From Oculina patagonica (taxonomy: Eukaryota): a stretch of 64,000 nucleotides of DNA. The first letter of the stretch is position 1. The number at the start of each line of letters is the position of its first letter. This document shows positions 7,386-42,100 of this stretch, piece after piece. The translations under genes were made by a program, and so were the position numbers. Below the pieces are notes generated by a model. That model made no database searches. It was not told where the DNA came from and was given only the letters and a program-made list of their open reading frames with translations. The stretch spans positions 8,928,001 to 8,992,000 of the forward strand of contig NC_135765.1 of assembly GCF_052425735.1 (NCBI RefSeq), read 5' to 3'.

Positions 7386-8720
7386 ATGGCCATTGTCGAC
7401 GAAAACTGGCAGACGAAGCGATCAACTATCAAAGAGAGAACCACGTTTATTTTCAACACGGAGACACTGAGCGCTGTGAAATTTGTTGTTCCACGGTCGA
7501 CTGATGAATGTGAGAGCAAAAAGTCTAAATTGGTGATCCAAGCTCACAAGTTTGTGCTTGCCATCAGCAGTCCTGTGTTCTTTGCCATGTTCTATGGTCC
7601 AATGGCGGAGACTTCAGACTCTATTGAACTGCCTGACTGTGAGTACGAGAGTCTGTTGGAGATGTTTCGTTATTTGTACAGCGACGAAGTGAAGCTGAGC
7701 GGAAATAATGTGATGCAAGTGCTGTACTTGGCGAACAAGTATATGGTGCCTTCTCTTGCTAAAAAATGTAACGAATATCTTCGAGAGAACTTAAAAACAT
7801 CCAATGTGTTTTGCATTCTCCCGTTCGCTCAGAAATTTGAAGATAAAAATTTGGAGGATCGATGCTGGGAAGTGATTGAGAAGCAGACAGAAGAAGCTGT
7901 GACGTCAGATGAATTTGTTACAGTTGAGCGATCACTAGTCGAGACAGTCGTGAAAAGAGCAGAAAGACTCGGAAGGTTGAACGTGAAGGAAGTAGAACTA
8001 TTCAAAGCTGTTGATCGCTGGGCCACAAAAGAAAGTGAAAGGCAAGGGATAACTCCTGATGGCCATGCGAAGAGACGAATTCTTGGAGAGGAGATCGTGA
8101 AAGCGATAAGGTTTCAAAGGATGTCACAGAAGGAGTTTGCGTCAGTTGTAATTGATTCTGACATTCTTACATCTAAGGAGGTTGGTGACATGATGAAACT
8201 TTTCAGTGATGTTTTAACATCTCCAATTGTACAAGCCCCAAGGGTAGTTGCTCTAACTGGTCATCGGGTTCAAAGATTTGGAACCTTTAAACCGCCATTA
8301 ACAAATCGGTTATGTGATGGTATGGCTGATTATATAAATTTTACTGTTAACAAACCCATCACGTTATATGGAGTTCAACATTTTGGTTCTGAAGGTGGCA
8401 AGTACAAGGTTTACACTGAAATTAAAGATACCACATGTACAGATATCTGTTCTCTGGTGATACAATTCGAATCATACACTTCAGAAAAGGACGAGACTTA
8501 TGATTATTACGGCTTTGATGTACGGTTTGATCGTCCAGTTTGTTTAGAGGAAGGCAAAGAGTACATGTTAATGGCGGTTATTATCGGTCCTAAGTCATGG
8601 TATGGAGAAGACGGACAAACATCTGTTGAGTGTCAAGGAGTACGATTTACATTCCGTTCTCATGTCCCTTTCAGAACCACTGAAACAAGAGGCCAGTTTC
8701 CTGCGTTTTTGTTAGCTTAA
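7386..8720 (+). CDS. BTB-BACK-PHR protein (BTBD3/BTBD6-like, putative CUL3 adaptor), copy C, intronless, 444 aa
   Basis: ATG 7386 aligns with the paralog starts (the track's TTG extension is unlikely). BTB motifs AHKFVLAISSPVFFAMFYG and VLYLANKYMVPSL; BACK motifs EVELFKAVDRWA and IRF; C-terminal PHR-like YINFTVNKPITLYGV..GQFPAFL. Confidence 0.9.
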   Translation: MAIVDENWQTKRSTIKERTTFIFNTETLSAVKFVVPRSTDECESKKSKLVIQAHKFVLAISSPVFFAMFYGPMAETSDSIELPDCEYESLLEMFRYLYSDEVKLSGNNVMQVLYLANKYMVPSLAKKCNEYLRENLKTSNVFCILPFAQKFEDKNLEDRCWEVIEKQTEEAVTSDEFVTVERSLVETVVKRAERLGRLNVKEVELFKAVDRWATKESERQGITPDGHAKRRILGEEIVKAIRFQRMSQKEFASVVIDSDILTSKEVGDMMKLFSDVLTSPIVQAPRVVALTGHRVQRFGTFKPPLTNRLCDGMADYINFTVNKPITLYGVQHFGSEGGKYKVYTEIKDTTCTDICSLVIQFESYTSEKDETYDYYGFDVRFDRPVCLEEGKEYMLMAVIIGPKSWYGEDGQTSVECQGVRFTFRSHVPFRTTETRGQFPAFLLA

Positions 8721-8723
8721 GCC

Positions 8724-8864
8724 TAGCCTGTTCCAGGCTCTCGGTTTGTGGGGAAGAGCGAAAAAGGCGTGCGACCGCGGAAAAGACTCCCGCTCGTTGT
8801 TTCCCTCGGTCGCTCGCACGCTTTTTTCGCTCTTCCCCACAAACCGAAAGCCTGGAACAGGCTA
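8724..8864. mobile_element. Hairpin MITE (TAGCCTG..CAGGCTA) inserted 3 bp after the BTB copy C stop codon
   Basis: Long TIRs TAGCCTGTTCCAGGCTCTCGGTTTGTGGGGAAGAGCGAAAAA. It is absent at the same position in copies A (38331) and B. Confidence 0.85.
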
Positions 8865-9252
8865 GCTCTTTTGTCAGTCTTAGCCCAGTCTAGTAGTTGT
8901 ACATATCGAGTTCTTTGCTAATCCGTTCTATGTTGAAGTACTCCTTAGTACATTATTTTTGTTTTGAGTGTCTTCGTGTCTCCGAAAAGAGGTCAACATT
9001 AATTACACTTCCGTAACTCGTAACATGTAAAGGCTTATGTATGCTACACCTTGAAAGACGATTGGTGCTTCTGAGATGCATCAAGCATCTCAGAAGCGTT
9101 TAGTGTATGGGAAGTAATAAAAGAATGCAGGCTAAATATACAATCTACTTGGTTTTGACTACTTGTTACTGGGATTTGACACTGTACCCCCCCCCCCCCC
9201 CCCCACCCCCTTCCGAATGGGATCTCATCCTTCCACCAGGTTGACGACTCAT

Positions 9253-10146
9253 CGTAGTTGTTCATTTAGCGCGGTGTCTCGTAAATGTCTGTTTTCGATT
9301 CGCAAGGCTTCAAGTTGCGCGTTCGTTACCTTCAAAGAACAATGAAATAAAACAGTTTTGGTGTGGAGAGCTACTTGGGCATATTCTAAGACAATCATAA
9401 TCAACCCTGTTATTCCGTTCACCCACTCTTCTCAAGGAAGATGCACTCATGTACCTACTTTATGTTGCAACACGCGCGCACCTCACGCGTGTATCCACAC
9501 GCACGCACGCGCCACACGCGTGTATCCACGCGCACGCACGCACGCACATAGACACTAACATTTCCAATGCTTACCTGAAGTTCAGCAGCTGCGCGCTCTG
9601 TCATGCTTTGCGCTTGCTTCACGAAGGTCTTTTTCCATGCGTTGAGTTCTCTCAGTGATGGATGCAATTGCAACGTCCCTATCATCAAATGAAATAAGAT
9701 CAAAATAAGAAAAAAAAAGAAGAGAAAACTTGCCACAACAAAAATAAGCCTTCATAGGCGCGCAAGAGAAGGAAAGGAAAGGAAAGGCAAAATGAAATAA
9801 AATAAAAAAGAAATAAAACGAAAAGAAACAAAAAGGAAAACAAAAGAGTTATAAGATAAGTAAGTGGAAAAAAGCTCAAAAGACCAGTTGTTTATCAGTG
9901 AAAAGAACATTCTCGTCTATAGAGCCGCCTGTCTCTCTTAGCTGGCGATTGGCTAGATGTAACAAAGGGAATTTTAAAGTTAGCAAAGCAACCGAAGGTA
10001 ACAAACAAACAAACGAACAATGCACATCCAAATGCAAAATCACCTTTTATGAAGTTCAGCAGTCATGTTACCAATCTGTTTCTTCATACCGTCCACTTCA
10101 GCCTGATGTCCATCCTTAACAGTTGAGACCCTTGCTATTTTTTGAG
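9253..10146 (-). pseudogene. CEP63: CEP63 pseudo-exons 17-19, unit C
   Basis: Exon 17 (10044-10146) is +5 nt with an early TAG; exon 18 (9575-9678) has a +4-nt frameshift; the exon 19 (9253-9329) donor has changed GT to AT; exons 20-24 are deleted. Confidence 0.85.
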
Positions 10147-10512
10147 CTGTAGATTCAAACGCACTATCACAAGTTCCATAAACTACCGACATTTCTGAAG
10201 AATTCAAACCACGAGTTTAGTTGGTTTATTCAGCAACCGAGAAGCATCACTCCAATTAAGTTCGTCCAGAATTAAAGGAGCTTGCGGCACTGGCCAAATG
10301 CCGGAGTAACCTGATTAAAAATTCGAGATTCGACTGTCTTATCAAAAGACATGACAGACGCTTATACCATTTACGTTGCCAACAACAACCGAATGGTTGT
10401 CCTCAAAGAAGACTGGGAACAGGAGAAACGTACAAATGGTAAAGAAATTTTCGGTGAGACTAAACCTTGTGAGCCTTGATGTGACAATTCAAAAGAAAGT
10501 TGTTGGTGAGTA

Positions 10513-10918
10513 CAGTCAACTCTCGTTATGGCGGAAACGCTCGGGACGCCGTTGAGTGTACGTAATAGCGAGAGTCCGTAATAGTGGGGTGTGAAAAAAA
10601 AAGTGCTGTTAACATGAGTTAAATATAATATAGACTATGACGAGCACATCAGCAGTGGTGAAGCTGCTAAGCAGTCGATAGTAATTACTACGTAATTAAG
10701 TTACATGAGAAAGTTACTGTGTCCGCTTCATCGAGAGTCAAAACACTAAATTTGTTATTTTGGTACCACGAAAGTGTACGTAATTCCGCAATAGCGAGAG
10801 TCCGTAATAACGGCAGTCATTTCCAGTCAAACTTCTATAGCTTTCTCCGAGATCTGGATTTTGTCCGTTATAGCGAGCGTCCGTAAAAGCGGGCTGTCCG
10901 CAAGGCGAGAGTTGACTG
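10513..10918. mobile_element. Tc1/mariner-type MITE (CAGTCAACTCTCG..CGAGAGTTGACTG, TA flanks)
   Basis: TIRs and TA dinucleotides at 10511-10512 and 10919-10920. A paralogous copy at 30586-31546 shows that it predates the duplication. Confidence 0.8.
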
Positions 10919-11793
10919 TATTTTGCCAGGAGCTGGTACAAAAGAAAAACGAGGCACGGTATTTCATATCAAGGCGTTCGCAAAGCGATGGGGCGGGGTT
11001 AAACTTGTCACATTTCTCAATACACCTATCCTACTGTCTAGAAGTTTTGAAGATTAGACGACCGCAATCCAATGACAAAACAAAAAGCTGTAAACAATCA
11101 TTCTTTATTCTCACTTTACATTATAGCTAGAGGCAGTTTGTTTTTTCTCCACCTCAAGAAAACTTCACAAATATCTACCAATACACTGTAAGCGATTTCA
11201 ACCTCGTTGTCACAGTATACGCCGGGTCACTCCGAAATTCATAAACTTGCGTACAAAGATCTTAATTTGCTCATTAAATTAAAATCGAATACAGTCTTCG
11301 TATTGAACTATACAGTACTGATATTTAAAGTTAAAAAGTAACAAAAAACGTAATTGTAATAAATAAGTTTACAAATAGCCTGAAAACTAGTATATGCTGC
11401 AACATATTGCTTTGTAGATACAAGATAATTTCGTTAGTGTTGCAAAAGTAACAGAAAATATTGTTCTTATTAGTTGAGTAGAGAGAATACGGGATGAAAG
11501 TGACCTACCTAGTAACGAAAAAGCCCAGAATCGAATAATAATTAAGTTAATTTAGATTTTTTCACAAATAGTGCTACCTGTGAGTAATAATTTAGAAATA
11601 AATTATGGCCACTCCTGGGTAATCTTGTAGTGGACTGTCTCAATGAAGCCTATGAGTGTGGTGAACTTTCAACTTCTCAGAAAATGGCCATAATTAAATT
11701 GATAGAAAAGAAGGGAAAAGATAAAATGTATATTAAAAACTGGAGGCCGATCTCGCTCCTAAATGTGGATGTCAAGATTGCATCCAAAGCTAT

Positions 11794-36100: not shown

Positions 36101-39100
36101 CTTCTAACGTTGTAAGTTTCTCGCGAAGAGTTGCTACCTCACTTCGCAAATTTCTGTTATCATCCTGAAATGGCACAATCAGGCCATGGAATGCAAGAAG
36201 ACAAGTTGTTGTCTCGTGTATTTTTTTTTCAAAACGTCCATTTAAAGTAGCTAGGATAGCATATTGTTTCTTACATTCACAAATGATAAAATCCTTATAA
36301 GCAAAGGCTTAATGTCATCAAGAAGTGCAAGAATAAGTTTGATTGTTTAGTGCATGAAATGCTACTAATCAGAGAATTGTCACCATCTCTAAATGTCCAA
36401 TCAGACTCAATCAGAGCCAAACTATTTGCGTGACATTGCATATTTTATTATGTTAATCTTAAGCGAACTTTTTCTGACAGTTTATTCTTTACATTTTTTG
36501 TGAACTTGATAATGAAAATGAAAAACAAAAAAATAAAAATTACCTCAAGTTGACCGATGAGCTGCAGATTACCACTGTAAAGGTCTGATAAATCCTTTAA
36601 AAAAACAACATAATTTAGGGTTAGTGTCTCTCAGCTAGTACGAATGGTCGCTTGTGTACTGTATTTCAAACAGAAACACCCCTATTATTTATTTAATTTA
36701 TTTATTTTCGAACTCAGTCAAGCACTGGGCAGCACGATTCAGTGTTAGGGGCACGGGCTTTCAGCAGCAAGAAATTATTTTTTCAAAAATCACAGCAGGA
36801 GACACGCAAGACGTATCCATTCAACGAAGCACACCATTTAACTCAGACAAATAGTCACGCAGTTGTGTGACAGGTTTTAAGCCCGCGCCCGCAAGCAATT
36901 TGCTCACTCAGCGGTAACTATTTCCTTGTTTCGTTTTTGCTTAGGGGACGGATAAAAAACTGAGCTGCATCGAAACATTTGTTGTATCAGAAAAACTGCA
37001 AACAAGCCAACGAGAAATGATGGCATTTGTCGAAGACAACTGGCAGACGAAGCGATCAACCATCAAAGAGAGAACCTCATTCATTTTCAACACGGAGATA
37101 CTGAGCGATGTGAAATTTGTTGTTCCAGTGTCGACTGGCGAAAGCGAAAGTAAGAAGGTGATCCCAGCTCACAAGTTTATGCTTGCCATAAGCAGTCCTG
37201 TGTTCTTTGCCATGTTTTATGGTCAAATGGCGGAGACTAAAGACTCTATTGAACTGCCTGACTGTGAGTACGAGAGTCTGTTGGAATTGTTTCGTTATTT
37301 GTACAGCGACGAAGTAAAGTTGAACGGAAGTAATGTGATGCAAGTGCTGTACTTGGCGAACAAGTATATGGTGCCGTCTCTTCGTATAAAATGTAACGAA
37401 TATCTTCGAGACAACTTGAAAACATCAAATGTGTTTTGCATTCTCCCGTTCGCTCAAAAATTTGAAGATAAAGATTTGGAGGATCGATGCTGGGAAGTGA
37501 TTGAGAAGCAGACAGAAGAAGCTGTGACGTCAGATGAATTTGTTACAGTTGAGCGATCACTAGTCGAGACAGTCGTGAAAAGAGAAAGGCTGAACGTGAA
37601 GGAAGTAGAGCTATTCAAAGCCGTTGATAGCTGGGTCACAAAAGAAAGTGAAAGGCAAGGGATAACTCCTGATGGCGTTGCAAAGAGACGAATTCTTGGT
37701 GAAGAAATCGTGAAAGCGATAAGGTTTCCATTGATGTCACAGAAGGAGTTTGCCTCAGTCGTAATTGATTCTGACATTCTTACTTCAAAAGAGGTTGGTG
37801 ACATGGTGAAACTTTTCAATGATGTTTTAACATCTCCACTGCCATTTGAACAAGCCCCAAGATTAGTAGCTCTAACTGTTAAACGGGTTCAAAGATTTGG
37901 AACCTTTAAACCGCCATCAGTCGACTGGGGATACGGTGGTTTTGATGATTATATAAATTTTTCTGTCAACAAGCCTATTATGTTACATGGAGTTCAGCAT
38001 TTTGGTTCTGAAGGTGGCAAGTACGTCGTTTCCACACAGATTACAGATGCTAGAGATAACTCATCTTTCGTGTTTCAATCAGGATCATACGCTTCAGAAA
38101 AGGACGAGACGTTTGGCTATTTCGGCTATGATGTACGGTTTGACCCTCCAGTTCGTTTGGAGAAAGATAAAGAGTACTTGTTATTGTCGTTTATTACCGG
38201 TCCTGTGTCATGGTATGGAGAAGATGGACAAACATCTGTTGAGTGTCAAGGAGTACGATTCACCTTCCGCACTTTTTACGGTAGAACCACTGAAACAAGA
38301 GGCCAGTTTCCTGCTTTTTTGCTAGCTTAAGTCCTCTTTTGTCAGTCTTAGCCCAGTCTACTGGTTGTACATATCGAGTTCTATCCTCATCAGTTCTAGT
38401 TAAGTTCCTTAGTACATTATTCTTGTTTTGTGGGTCTTCGTGTCTCCGAAAATAGGTCAACATTAATTACACTTCCGTGACCTGTTACATGTAAAAGCTT
38501 ATGTATGTTATACCGAAAGTGTATCGAATACCCGTTAAAGATGACTGGGATAATAAGAACTAGTGTATAGTAAAAGCATAAAGCATCTCAGTAGCATTTA
38601 GTGTATAGGAAACAATAAAAGAATGCATGCTAAATATATACTCTTCTTGGTTTTGACTACTTGCTTCTTAGTGTTCACGCTTGGATTTGACGCTGTACAC
38701 CCTCCCTCCGTATGGGATCTAGTTTATCCAGAAGGTGGACAATCAAAGCACAGACTCACCGTTAATTGTTCATTTAGAGCGGTGTCTCGTAAATGTCTGT
38801 TTTCAATTCGCAATGCCTCAAGTTGCGCGTTCGTTACCTGAAAAGATGAAAAGAATAATGAAATAAATCAATTTTAGCTCGTTTACAAACAACAAACCCA
38901 ACTGAACACGCAAAAGTACCCTAGCCTGCTATGCATGGCACAATCCTATCCTCGCCAGATTACACTCAACTGAAGAGCTCAGTTTGAGCCACTAGGGTAT
39001 AGTTATTCATAATCAACCCTGTTTTTCTTTCACTTACTCTTCTCGAGAGAGATTGCACAGATATACTAGTACCAGAACCAACACGCGCGCACTTCACGCG

Positions 39101-42100
39101 TGTATCCAGGCACGTACGCACGCGCACGCAGACACGTACATTTGCAAGGCTTACCTGAAGTTCGGCAGCTGCTCTGTCATGCTTTGCGTTTGCTTCACGA
39201 AGGTCTTTTTCCATGCGTTGAGTTCGCTCAGTGATGGATGCCATTGCAGCGTCCCTATTGTAAATGAAAGAAGGTCAAAGATCGAAAAAACTAAATAAAT
39301 AAACTTTGTCAAGAAAGACAAGAAAATAAAATAATAAAGTTAATCGGCAATAAGTGGAACTCTTCTAAGGGCTATGACTGCGGATCCCAAGGTAAACAAG
39401 CAAACAAACAAACAATGCACATCCAAATGCAAAATCACCTTTTATGAAGTTCAGCAGTCATGTTAGCAATCTGTTCCTTCATACCGTCCACCTCAGCCTG
39501 ATGCCCATCCTCTCCGGTTGAAATCCTCTCTTTAAGCTGTAGGTTCAAAGTATTATTAAAGTTTTAAAAAATAACCGACACTTCTTTAACTCTTTAATAC
39601 TAAGATTTTATCCGTCATCGATCGTCTCACCAAAAGAAATGACGCTTATACCATTTACGTCATCAACAACGACCTCATGGTTGTCCTCGAAGAAGAAAAT
39701 TATTGGCGTTCCGTTCTAACCAGAGAAGTAGGAGTACCTCTGAAGGAACGCCATAATGTTCTTCAAAGTTTCGAACCATTTCGAACACGTTCCCAGGGCC
39801 TCTACCGCCCGGTCCAAATTACCAAGGAAAAAACCCTGGGGGTACTAGGTTAGGTGGGTACTGGTGTGCACCCTAGCTCATGCTATTTGAGGAATCTCTG
39901 GACTAATCGTTATTTTAGAAAAGTGGAGTTTTCTAACCTTTGAATTTTCCAGCATCAGTTGTTTGAGGTCATTGTCTTCTATGAACTTCACTTCCTCCTG
40001 CTAAAAGTTCAAAAGTAAAGCATCACTTACAAACAAATATAATAAACAGTGTCAAAACCACTGCCTGGTCAGATAAAAAGGGCAAAATGCATGGGAAAAA
40101 ATGTCTTGTGCAAAACACATAAATTACAATAACTTACCTTTCTGCACAGCTCTGCCTGTAGCTTAGAGAGTTCATTTTTACTATTTTCCAGTCTGTTGAA
40201 AGGGAAAGAAATAGTGCAACGAAGTTTAGATTCATTTAGACAAGCACAAAGCAAGATTTCAGAGCTTTTGTAAATGATCTTACTTTTGATTCAGATGGTT
40301 CAGTTCATTCTTTTGATATTGACTGGTGTCTAGCTGCGACCTGCGTGAAAACGATATCTTTTAAAATACTGACAATGATTTTAAACTCGCTGATACGGGT
40401 AACGGTGTAAGAATTTGAACAGGAAAGGTAAAGGAACTACAAGCGTAGACAAAAGTAGTTGGAACGCTTACCTTTTGAAAAGCCGAAAGAAATGCAAATA
40501 CTTCACGCTTAAACAGATTAAACTGTCACATTCAATATTTTTAGAGGGCCCACTCCCCCTTTCAATGTTGAGCTATTCAAGGAATTTCTGTGCAATATAT
40601 TGGGGGGGGGGGGGGGGTCAATGTTTGAGATCGGGAGGGAGAGAAAAGGAAAAAAATTGGTAATCGTGACAACAATTTTGAGGAGGGTTATATGTTTTTT
40701 CTGATGTATAATAAAATTGCTTTCAAATTGAAGGAAACCTCAAAATAATAGTTTTCCAACGCAGAAAAACACCAAAGGAGTAAAAATAAATGGAAAATAA
40801 ACAAGGATGTTTAAGACGGAGGGAGATTATGTCGGATTACAAATGACAAACTTGAAAAAGTTGGGCAATTTTTTTAAGATACGCCGTCTGTGACGCTAGG
40901 TTGGTTTCCACTGACGTGTAATTTTAGGTGCGTTTACAGGTGTTTTTTTTTTAAAAAAGCGACTCACTGTATTTCCATTCGGCTCGTCCTGAGATCTTCT
41001 TTTAACCTCCTTACTTCAATATTTTCTGTTCGTCTACTAACGTCTTCCAATTGCCTGAAAATAAGCCAAAAAACGTTGATTATAACAAACAATGTTTTCC
41101 AATTTTATTTTCAAGTAAAAAAAAAAAAAAGAAATAGCCCTAAACAGAAAGTTTGACTGCGATTTCTTAGATGTTTTTCTCAAAAGCAGCCAGAAACATA
41201 GTCTCCTCCGCAGCCGTTGTTTGGGCTCGTCACGCAACGCTTCTCTCGAGGGAGCGTTGCGTGACGATCCAAGTAACGGCTGCGAAGAAGACTACCAGAA
41301 ACACTACTGACAAAACAAACAACAACAACAAAGACAAATTAAAGAGGCCTCGATTCTCTGTCGTACCTGATAACCTCGTCCTTCATTATCAAACTGTGTT
41401 CCAGTTTAGACATGTCTTCTGAATGCTGTCTTTGGTCATCTTCTGCTGCCTGCAGTCAACAGAAATAAGCTCGCTGTAGCATAGATGTTTTTTATCTACT
41501 GTCGCTCTTAAAAGCCTGTAGTTGAAGAATGTACAGGGCTCAAAAGACAAATGAGACGGCGCGAGGTACCATTCGATGGTGTCTTTTCATTCCGACATCT
41601 TTCTCTGCTTTTGCTACCTGAAGATACTTTACTTTGCTACTTTACGGTATACTGTATGTCGAAATTTCCAAAGACGATGAATGAACATTATATATATTTT
41701 GTATGCGGTACACTGCATGTGGTTTAGGAACGCAATTCTTGTGTTCACCCACTCAAGTCGGTTTTTGTCGAAGGTTATGCCAACTAGTCCCAAGTGCACG
41801 GGGATTCTTTTATTAAGAAAAACAACCAACCAAAGAAACAAACACGAGAAAGTAAAATAAATTAAAATACAATACCCTAATAAGATCGTCTCTGGCTTGA
41901 AGTTCTAGCTGCAGATGACCATTATCTTCCTCAAGACGCTGAAAAAAATAATGAAAAATAAGACCGACTTACTGTAAAGAGACATTTTGCTTTGCGTAAT
42001 ATTTTGCTAGGAAAAAGGACGGGTAGGCGAGGAAGGGGTAAAGGGGACATGACAAAGCACCCCCCTCTCCTTTGTCCAGTGCCCCCCCTTTCATCTCCCC

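Follow-up and report, generated by a model that had tools for sequence, protein, structure and literature searches.

Constrained BTB/BACK halves and variable PHR loops in tandem BTB-BACK-PHR genes of the coral Oculina patagonica

How do tandem gene copies come to keep one half of their protein alike while the other half varies? The question is raised by three paralogous genes, here called A, B and C, in a stretch of 64,000 nt from the coral Oculina patagonica (NCBI RefSeq assembly GCF_052425735.1, contig NC_135765.1, positions 8,928,001 to 8,992,000; hereafter the window). Each gene encodes a BTB, a BACK and a C-terminal PHR domain. An earlier note, made from the letters of the window alone, had described BTB/BACK as nearly fixed and the PHR loops as variable, and had proposed that the specificity of these proteins for their substrates is diversifying. 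We found that purifying selection is strong on BTB/BACK, where the phi-x-E motif is kept, and moderate on the core of the PHR beta-sandwich, and that three or four PHR loops evolve near the neutral rate with frequent indels. We think it probable, without being confident, that the three genes are young tandem duplicates in a lineage-specific family of single-exon, BTBD6-like CUL3 adaptors that share a docking module and differ in what their PHR loops bind. Adaptive diversification of the loops is weakly supported.

Three genes and their family

Each of the three genes is a single exon made of one uninterrupted open reading frame (ORF) of 435–444 codons, all on the plus strand (Table 1). The peptide strings quoted in the earlier note were all found in these complete ORFs, at the positions given there. 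A tblastn search of the 64-kb window found no fourth copy of the gene, so there are exactly three. In all three proteins a BTB domain (PF00651; 76–84 bits against a curated cut-off of 20.5) is followed by a BACK domain (PF07707; 33–47 bits, cut-off 20.9) and a C-terminal PHR domain (PF08005; 65–73 bits, cut-off 23.6). The closest solved structure by sequence is 2vkp, the human BTBD6 BTB domain (E 5e-26); PHR domains of BTBD2 and of MYCBP2 are also among the best matches. In the AlphaFold2 model of copy C, confidence is high for PHR (predicted local distance difference test, pLDDT, 81–95) and low for BTB (pLDDT <50 at residues 26–97), probably because the alignment is shallow in diversity. Foldseek matched the PHR model to 3no8, 3gbw and 3hwj (E 5e-13 to 1e-10), the top match being the PHR domain of BTBD2 (3no8; TM 0.84, rmsd 2.4 Å).

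Table 1. Coordinates in the window of the three genes, of the segments discussed in the text and of the duplication units. Residue numbers are those of copy C.
Feature	Position	Strand	Description	Basis
Copy A	7386–8720	+	Intact intronless BTB-BACK-PHR gene, 444 aa; first of the array, most deviant copy	ORF, Pfam
Copy B	25534–26841	+	Intact BTB-BACK-PHR gene, 435 aa; C-terminal PHR loop shortened	ORF, Pfam
Copy C	37017–38330	+	Intact BTB-BACK-PHR gene, 437 aa; reference for residue numbering	ORF, Pfam
phi-x-E motif of copy C, BTB domain	37227–37235	+	M71-A72-E73	Aligned to M-S-E of KLHL3, PDB 4hxi
36-codon stretch in BACK	A 7851–7958; B 25990–26097; C 37476–37583	+	Protein-identical in A, B and C	
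PHR beta-sandwich of copy C	37881–38327	+	Residues 289–437	Pfam PF08005, DSSP strands, Foldseek
Hypervariable loop 1	37911–37946	+	Residues 299–310; 9–18 residues in 74 paralogues; sites 302, 303, 307; omega ~0.94	
Variable loop	38049–38063	+	Residues 345–349; length 2–16 residues; omega ~0.81	
Loop 395–399	38199–38213	+	Contains recurrent high-omega site V397	
Hypervariable C-terminal loop	38271–38312	+	Residues 419–432; length 7–24 residues; omega 0.74–0.98	
Two tandem segmental duplication units carrying B and C	20233–43000		~11.5 kb each; right end approximate	Self-BLAST

Pairwise amino-acid identity among A, B and C is 86.5–90.1% in the N-terminal part versus 66.9–70.4% in the PHR domain (Fisher p 2e-7 to 3e-6), and the majority of gap columns in their alignment fall within PHR. 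Variation and indels are concentrated in predicted loops. Substitutions and indels do cluster in the C-terminal domain, as the earlier note had it, and the contrast between the halves is real; ‘nearly fixed’ is too strong a term for BTB/BACK, where 10–13% of the residues differ. The same contrast was seen in 75 full-length paralogues from six chromosomes.

Copy A stands out among the three. At columns conserved in at least 90% of 99 homologues it departs from the consensus 13 times, compared with six times for B and six for C (the family as a whole has a median of 6 and a 90th percentile of 11). Its loop 1 lacks the W and the Y that are otherwise conserved, its LSDV motif lacks the D, and several more residues that hardly vary in the family are missing too; it also carries two small insertions. 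Although its ORF is intact, this copy may be on its way to becoming non-functional.

A, B and C are tandem segmental duplicates. The noncoding flanks of the units are 66–92% identical at constant offsets in self-BLAST. The homology of A to B and C begins only 40 nt upstream of the ATG; thus the upstream region of A differs from those of the other two.

The three genes belong to a large family. A genome-wide protein search gave 96 near-full-length single-exon matches scored out of 626 candidates. A search of the genome with the PHR profile produced 210 candidates, of which 150 passed the cut-off, ~100 of the 150 lying in open frames of at least 430 aa. The PHR matches cluster on contigs C3, C12, C11, C7, C6 and C8. 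About one third of them have a truncated frame or contain stops, in keeping with a turnover by birth and death. The genome therefore holds at least 150 PHR-domain loci, and the family numbers at least 100 BTBD6-like genes that look intact, to use the name that the public annotation gives to the paralogues. Two pairs, L014/L015 (G000:C7:27576826-27578133 and 27584817-27586124; overall dS 0.004) and L038/L040 (C3:3856343 and 3950373; per-region dS 0–0.07), are near-identical, an indication that duplication or whole-gene conversion is ongoing in the family. The family is a large, lineage-specific tandem expansion with pseudogenes, one of the bigger expansions of this type in the genome. We found no description of a coral BTBD6-like expansion in the literature searched. 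Such a family would grow by segmental duplication and lose copies by the same birth-and-death process, with its members recombining now and then.

Selection and recombination along the gene

Rates were estimated by region from the 75 full-length coding sequences, as Nei–Gojobori totals over 20 phylogenetically independent sister pairs. The ratio omega of nonsynonymous (dN) to synonymous (dS) divergence is 0.25 in BTB (dN 0.051, dS 0.20), 0.28 in BACK (0.066, 0.23), 0.41 in the PHR strands (0.134, 0.33) and 0.63 in the three hypervariable loops, residues 299–310, 345–349 and 419–432 of C (0.289, 0.46; bootstrap confidence interval of omega 0.50–0.79). A maximum-likelihood fit of codon model M0 to 21 close paralogues gave an omega of 0.30 for BTB/BACK versus 0.54 for PHR, and A, B and C alone gave 0.27–0.38 for the N-terminal part and 0.58–0.75 for PHR. 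A uniform dN/dS below 1 across the domains, which the earlier note had set against its own proposal, is only half of what was observed: omega is below 1 in every region, yet it is far from uniform (0.25–0.63).

Sites were analysed with a FUBAR-like grid of our own, in which synonymous (alpha) and nonsynonymous (beta) rates vary per site and each half of the gene has a separate tree. A class with beta>alpha improves the fit for PHR (twice the log-likelihood difference, 2dlnL, 14.2 with 21 sequences and 11.8 with 74; for BTB/BACK 3.6 and 2.6), and the estimated fraction of such sites in PHR is 6–17%. All PHR sites flagged at P of at least 0.9 are in predicted loops except L390, which is in a strand; 12 of the 14 PHR sites with beta/alpha >1 are in predicted loops, and omega is higher in loops than in strands (Mann–Whitney p 6e-4). 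With 21 and 74 sequences, P(beta>alpha) is 1.00 and 0.96 for V397; for G307 the values in the two data sets are 0.86 and 0.95. Sites 302, 303, 421, 423 and 425 were flagged in the 21-sequence set only. At a few sites of the PHR loops the nonsynonymous rate is about twice the synonymous one.

Larger values come from approximate fits of the M8a/M8 type without variation of synonymous rates: for PHR, 2dlnL is 54 with 21 sequences and 79 with 74, and for BTB/BACK 22 and 1.6. In our M1a/M2a/M7/M8 fits branch lengths were fixed, the scale grid was coarse and values were interpolated, so that the results are indicative only; recombination, moreover, inflates site tests for positive selection. The site models that the earlier note had called for do yield a positively selected class in PHR; its signal is modest once synonymous rates may vary, and no region has an omega above 1.

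Much of this could also follow from relaxed constraint only. The duplicates would then be redundant and the PHR loops tolerant surface loops that drift and accept indels, their diversity having no functional meaning. An omega below 1 everywhere (0.63 in the most variable loops), the weakness of the positive-selection signal when synonymous rates vary, the truncated third of the PHR loci and the gathering of changes at conserved positions in copy A are all in line with such drift. The PHR domain is maintained, however, as is seen from the omega of 0.41 in its strands and from the ~100 intact ORFs. In addition, the two data sets agree in flagging G307 and V397, and for PHR the M8a/M8-type tests reach strong nominal significance, while BTB/BACK is not significant at 74 sequences though significant at 21 (21.7). 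We regard relaxed constraint only as possible but doubtful.

The trees of the two gene halves are incongruent (approximately unbiased, AU, test p 4e-8 and 1e-4), and the paralogues have thus exchanged segments. Exchange could in principle produce the contrast by itself, if gene conversion or unequal crossing-over homogenised the 5′ half and spared the 3′ half. Besides the incongruent trees, two observations speak for concerted evolution of this kind: dS of the 5′ half is ~0.6 of that of PHR, and a stretch of 108 nt in BACK is almost identical in A, B and C.

This stretch of 36 codons had served in the earlier note as an example of BTB/BACK fixation. The peptide identity is real, but synonymous sites are alike as well: at the DNA level the copies differ at 0–1 positions per 108 nt, where ~4 synonymous differences per pair were expected from a synonymous background of ~0.17–0.2 per site around the stretch. 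A Sawyer-type permutation test picked it out as the longest run of identity for each of the three pairs (p 0.005–0.03, uncorrected for 15 pairs). Because the DNA is almost identical too, the stretch is no proof of exceptional protein constraint; it looks like a locally homogenised patch or chance, rather than protein constraint alone. Across 74 paralogues synonymous rates within the stretch are ordinary, not low, and a functional element at the nucleotide level was rejected on this ground.

A syntenic array of at least three BTB-BACK-PHR genes (loci L088–L090) is present at 32–91 kb of contig ctg20523 in another coral assembly (ENA ERZ25067872). Its unit is ~11.35 kb long, and its flanks are 66–86% identical to the window. 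The array repeats the same domain pattern, and the omega of PHR among its three copies is 0.94. Whichever gene half is used, A, B and C form a group separate from the copies of the other assembly; hence the triplication is younger than that split, or whole genes have been homogenised. Concerted evolution of BTB/BACK combined with orthology of PHR across species was not seen.

The ratio of 5′ dS to PHR dS hardly follows the distance between copies. It is 0.73 for copies within 100 kb, 0.54 for copies far apart on the same chromosome, 0.65 for different chromosomes and 0.61 between the window array and the syntenic array. Since copies of different species cannot be homogenised, the lower dS of the 5′ half must come mainly from something other than conversion, and gene conversion as the full explanation was rejected: the ratio of ~0.6 is alike for neighbours, other chromosomes and the other species. 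The corresponding ratio for dN is ~0.25–0.3, a fourfold gap, which conversion does not explain either, set against a gap of only 1.6-fold in dS. The possibility raised in the earlier note, that conversion of the 5′ half explains the whole contrast, thus applies in part: 5′ synonymous sites are less diverged, by a like factor between species, but dN falls much further. With A, B and C set apart from the other species' copies in both halves, we consider concerted evolution a very unlikely source of the domain contrast.

Docking, binding and possible roles

BTB adaptors contact CUL3 through the phi-x-E motif. Of the 75 paralogues, 73–75 have it in the form [L/M]-A-E, and because of this conservation the proteins of the family are probably CUL3 adaptors of the ubiquitin-ligase type. 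The coral's own CUL3 gene has several exons. On the reading that we favour, all members would share BTB-BACK as one ligase-docking module for CUL3 and would differ in what their PHR loops bind, so that the family would offer a panel of binding specificities.

The earlier note had taken selection of substrates by the C-terminal domain as established. It is established for MATH and Kelch adaptors; for PHR the role of substrate selector can be proposed by analogy only. To our knowledge, no PHR ligand is known in any organism. Btbd6 is reported to recruit Plzf by heterodimerisation through BTB, with PHR having a localisation role (bioRxiv 10.1101/575910); we found no biochemical study of a BTB-BACK-PHR adaptor beyond this one. 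By extension of that precedent, the coral proteins might not act via PHR at all, but capture BTB-domain proteins by heterodimerisation or titrate CUL3, PHR variation being incidental. BTB, however, is the least variable domain (omega 0.25) and would give every paralogue the same partners, and such action would not explain why 100 or more copies retain a PHR core that is intact and constrained. We judge it highly improbable.

Several points, the Btbd6 precedent among them, weigh against our reading of the family as adaptors with differing PHR-loop binding. No domain or loop class reaches an omega of 1, the upper confidence limit in the hypervariable loops being 0.79. When synonymous-rate variation is allowed, the gain is only ~12–14 in 2dlnL and concerns just a few sites in loops; our own approximate implementation is the source of the larger M8-type values, and recombination is present. 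Among the points in favour of the reading, family k-mers were found in a polyA RNA library over the coding region of C and none over its flanks. As the RNA unitigs are short and common to paralogues, they show transcription of the family only and are not copy-specific.

‘Diversifying’ is right as a description, in that the PHR loops are the variable part. The claim of the earlier note that substrate specificity is diversifying holds to this extent: the loops vary, and omega in PHR (0.41–0.63) is about twice that of BTB/BACK. The adaptive signal is weak, with no omega above 1. The result is descriptive, its pattern real and its adaptive meaning weakly supported, and a role of the family in surveillance of symbionts or pathogens is speculation. 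In the boldest form of the idea, stony corals would keep a germline-encoded intracellular recognition repertoire of at least 100 CUL3 adaptors with a constant docking half, whose PHR loops, resembling complementarity-determining regions, would be selected to tag foreign proteins (effectors of symbionts, bacteria or viruses) for ubiquitination. We hold this to be unlikely.

Vertebrates have few BTB-BACK-PHR genes, and these are multi-exon. BTBD6, BTBD3, BTBD1 and BTBD2 of vertebrates match the coral proteins in their three domains and the order of these, and are similar in length; the coral genes differ in being single-exon, in the hundreds and in tandem arrays, and in having hypervariable PHR loops. 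Expanded MATH-BTB families (nematodes, grasses) and F-box families likewise combine a conserved cullin-docking module with a faster putative recognition domain, and likewise show lineage-specific tandem expansion with birth and death of copies (for MATH-BTB in grasses, see PMC4091423 and PMC6883508). In the coral family the variable module is the PHR beta-sandwich instead of MATH or FBA, and positive selection is weakly indicated.

Tandem clusters of BTBD6 are also known from hydrothermal-vent snails, where Chrysomallon squamiferum has 56 copies and Gigantopelta aegis 35 (PMC7736800), and the snail expansion has been counted as one of several immunity-related expansions in a host with symbionts (PMC7895826). 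These expansions belong to another phylum and are smaller than the coral family; the snail papers give copy number and no domain-wise evolution. Large, fast-turning families of ubiquitin-ligase adaptors are candidate repertoires for innate immunity or symbiosis control in animals without adaptive immunity, and how a coral host controls its intracellular algae, or pathogens such as Vibrio, is a central question of the field. The coral family is also a natural series of PHR variants that could be used to find what PHR binds.

Other features of the window

The unit of copy A is broken at 11600–20232 by inserted mobile-element DNA. An ORF of 711 aa in the inserted element (17904–20039) has reverse-transcriptase domains (RVT_1 and zf-RVT); an intact ORF of 1489 aa on the minus strand (12304–16773) gave no Pfam match.

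Contigs of two probable RNA runs contain splice-like joints on the minus strand, 36163>36543, 36593>38759 and 39536>39938. These joints, within 36079–39938, end in CT..AC, which is GT..AG on the minus strand. It seems that a spliced minus-strand transcript runs through the duplicated unit, with copy C inside one of its introns.

A satellite of 4.2 kb at 55865–60061 consists of units of ~10 nt (CATTCACCTT / CATACACCTT). Tandem Repeats Finder reports periods of 40 and 110 with 85% matches. The satellite is nearly free of G on the plus strand (GC skew −0.97), and the long ORFs within it are repeat artefacts.

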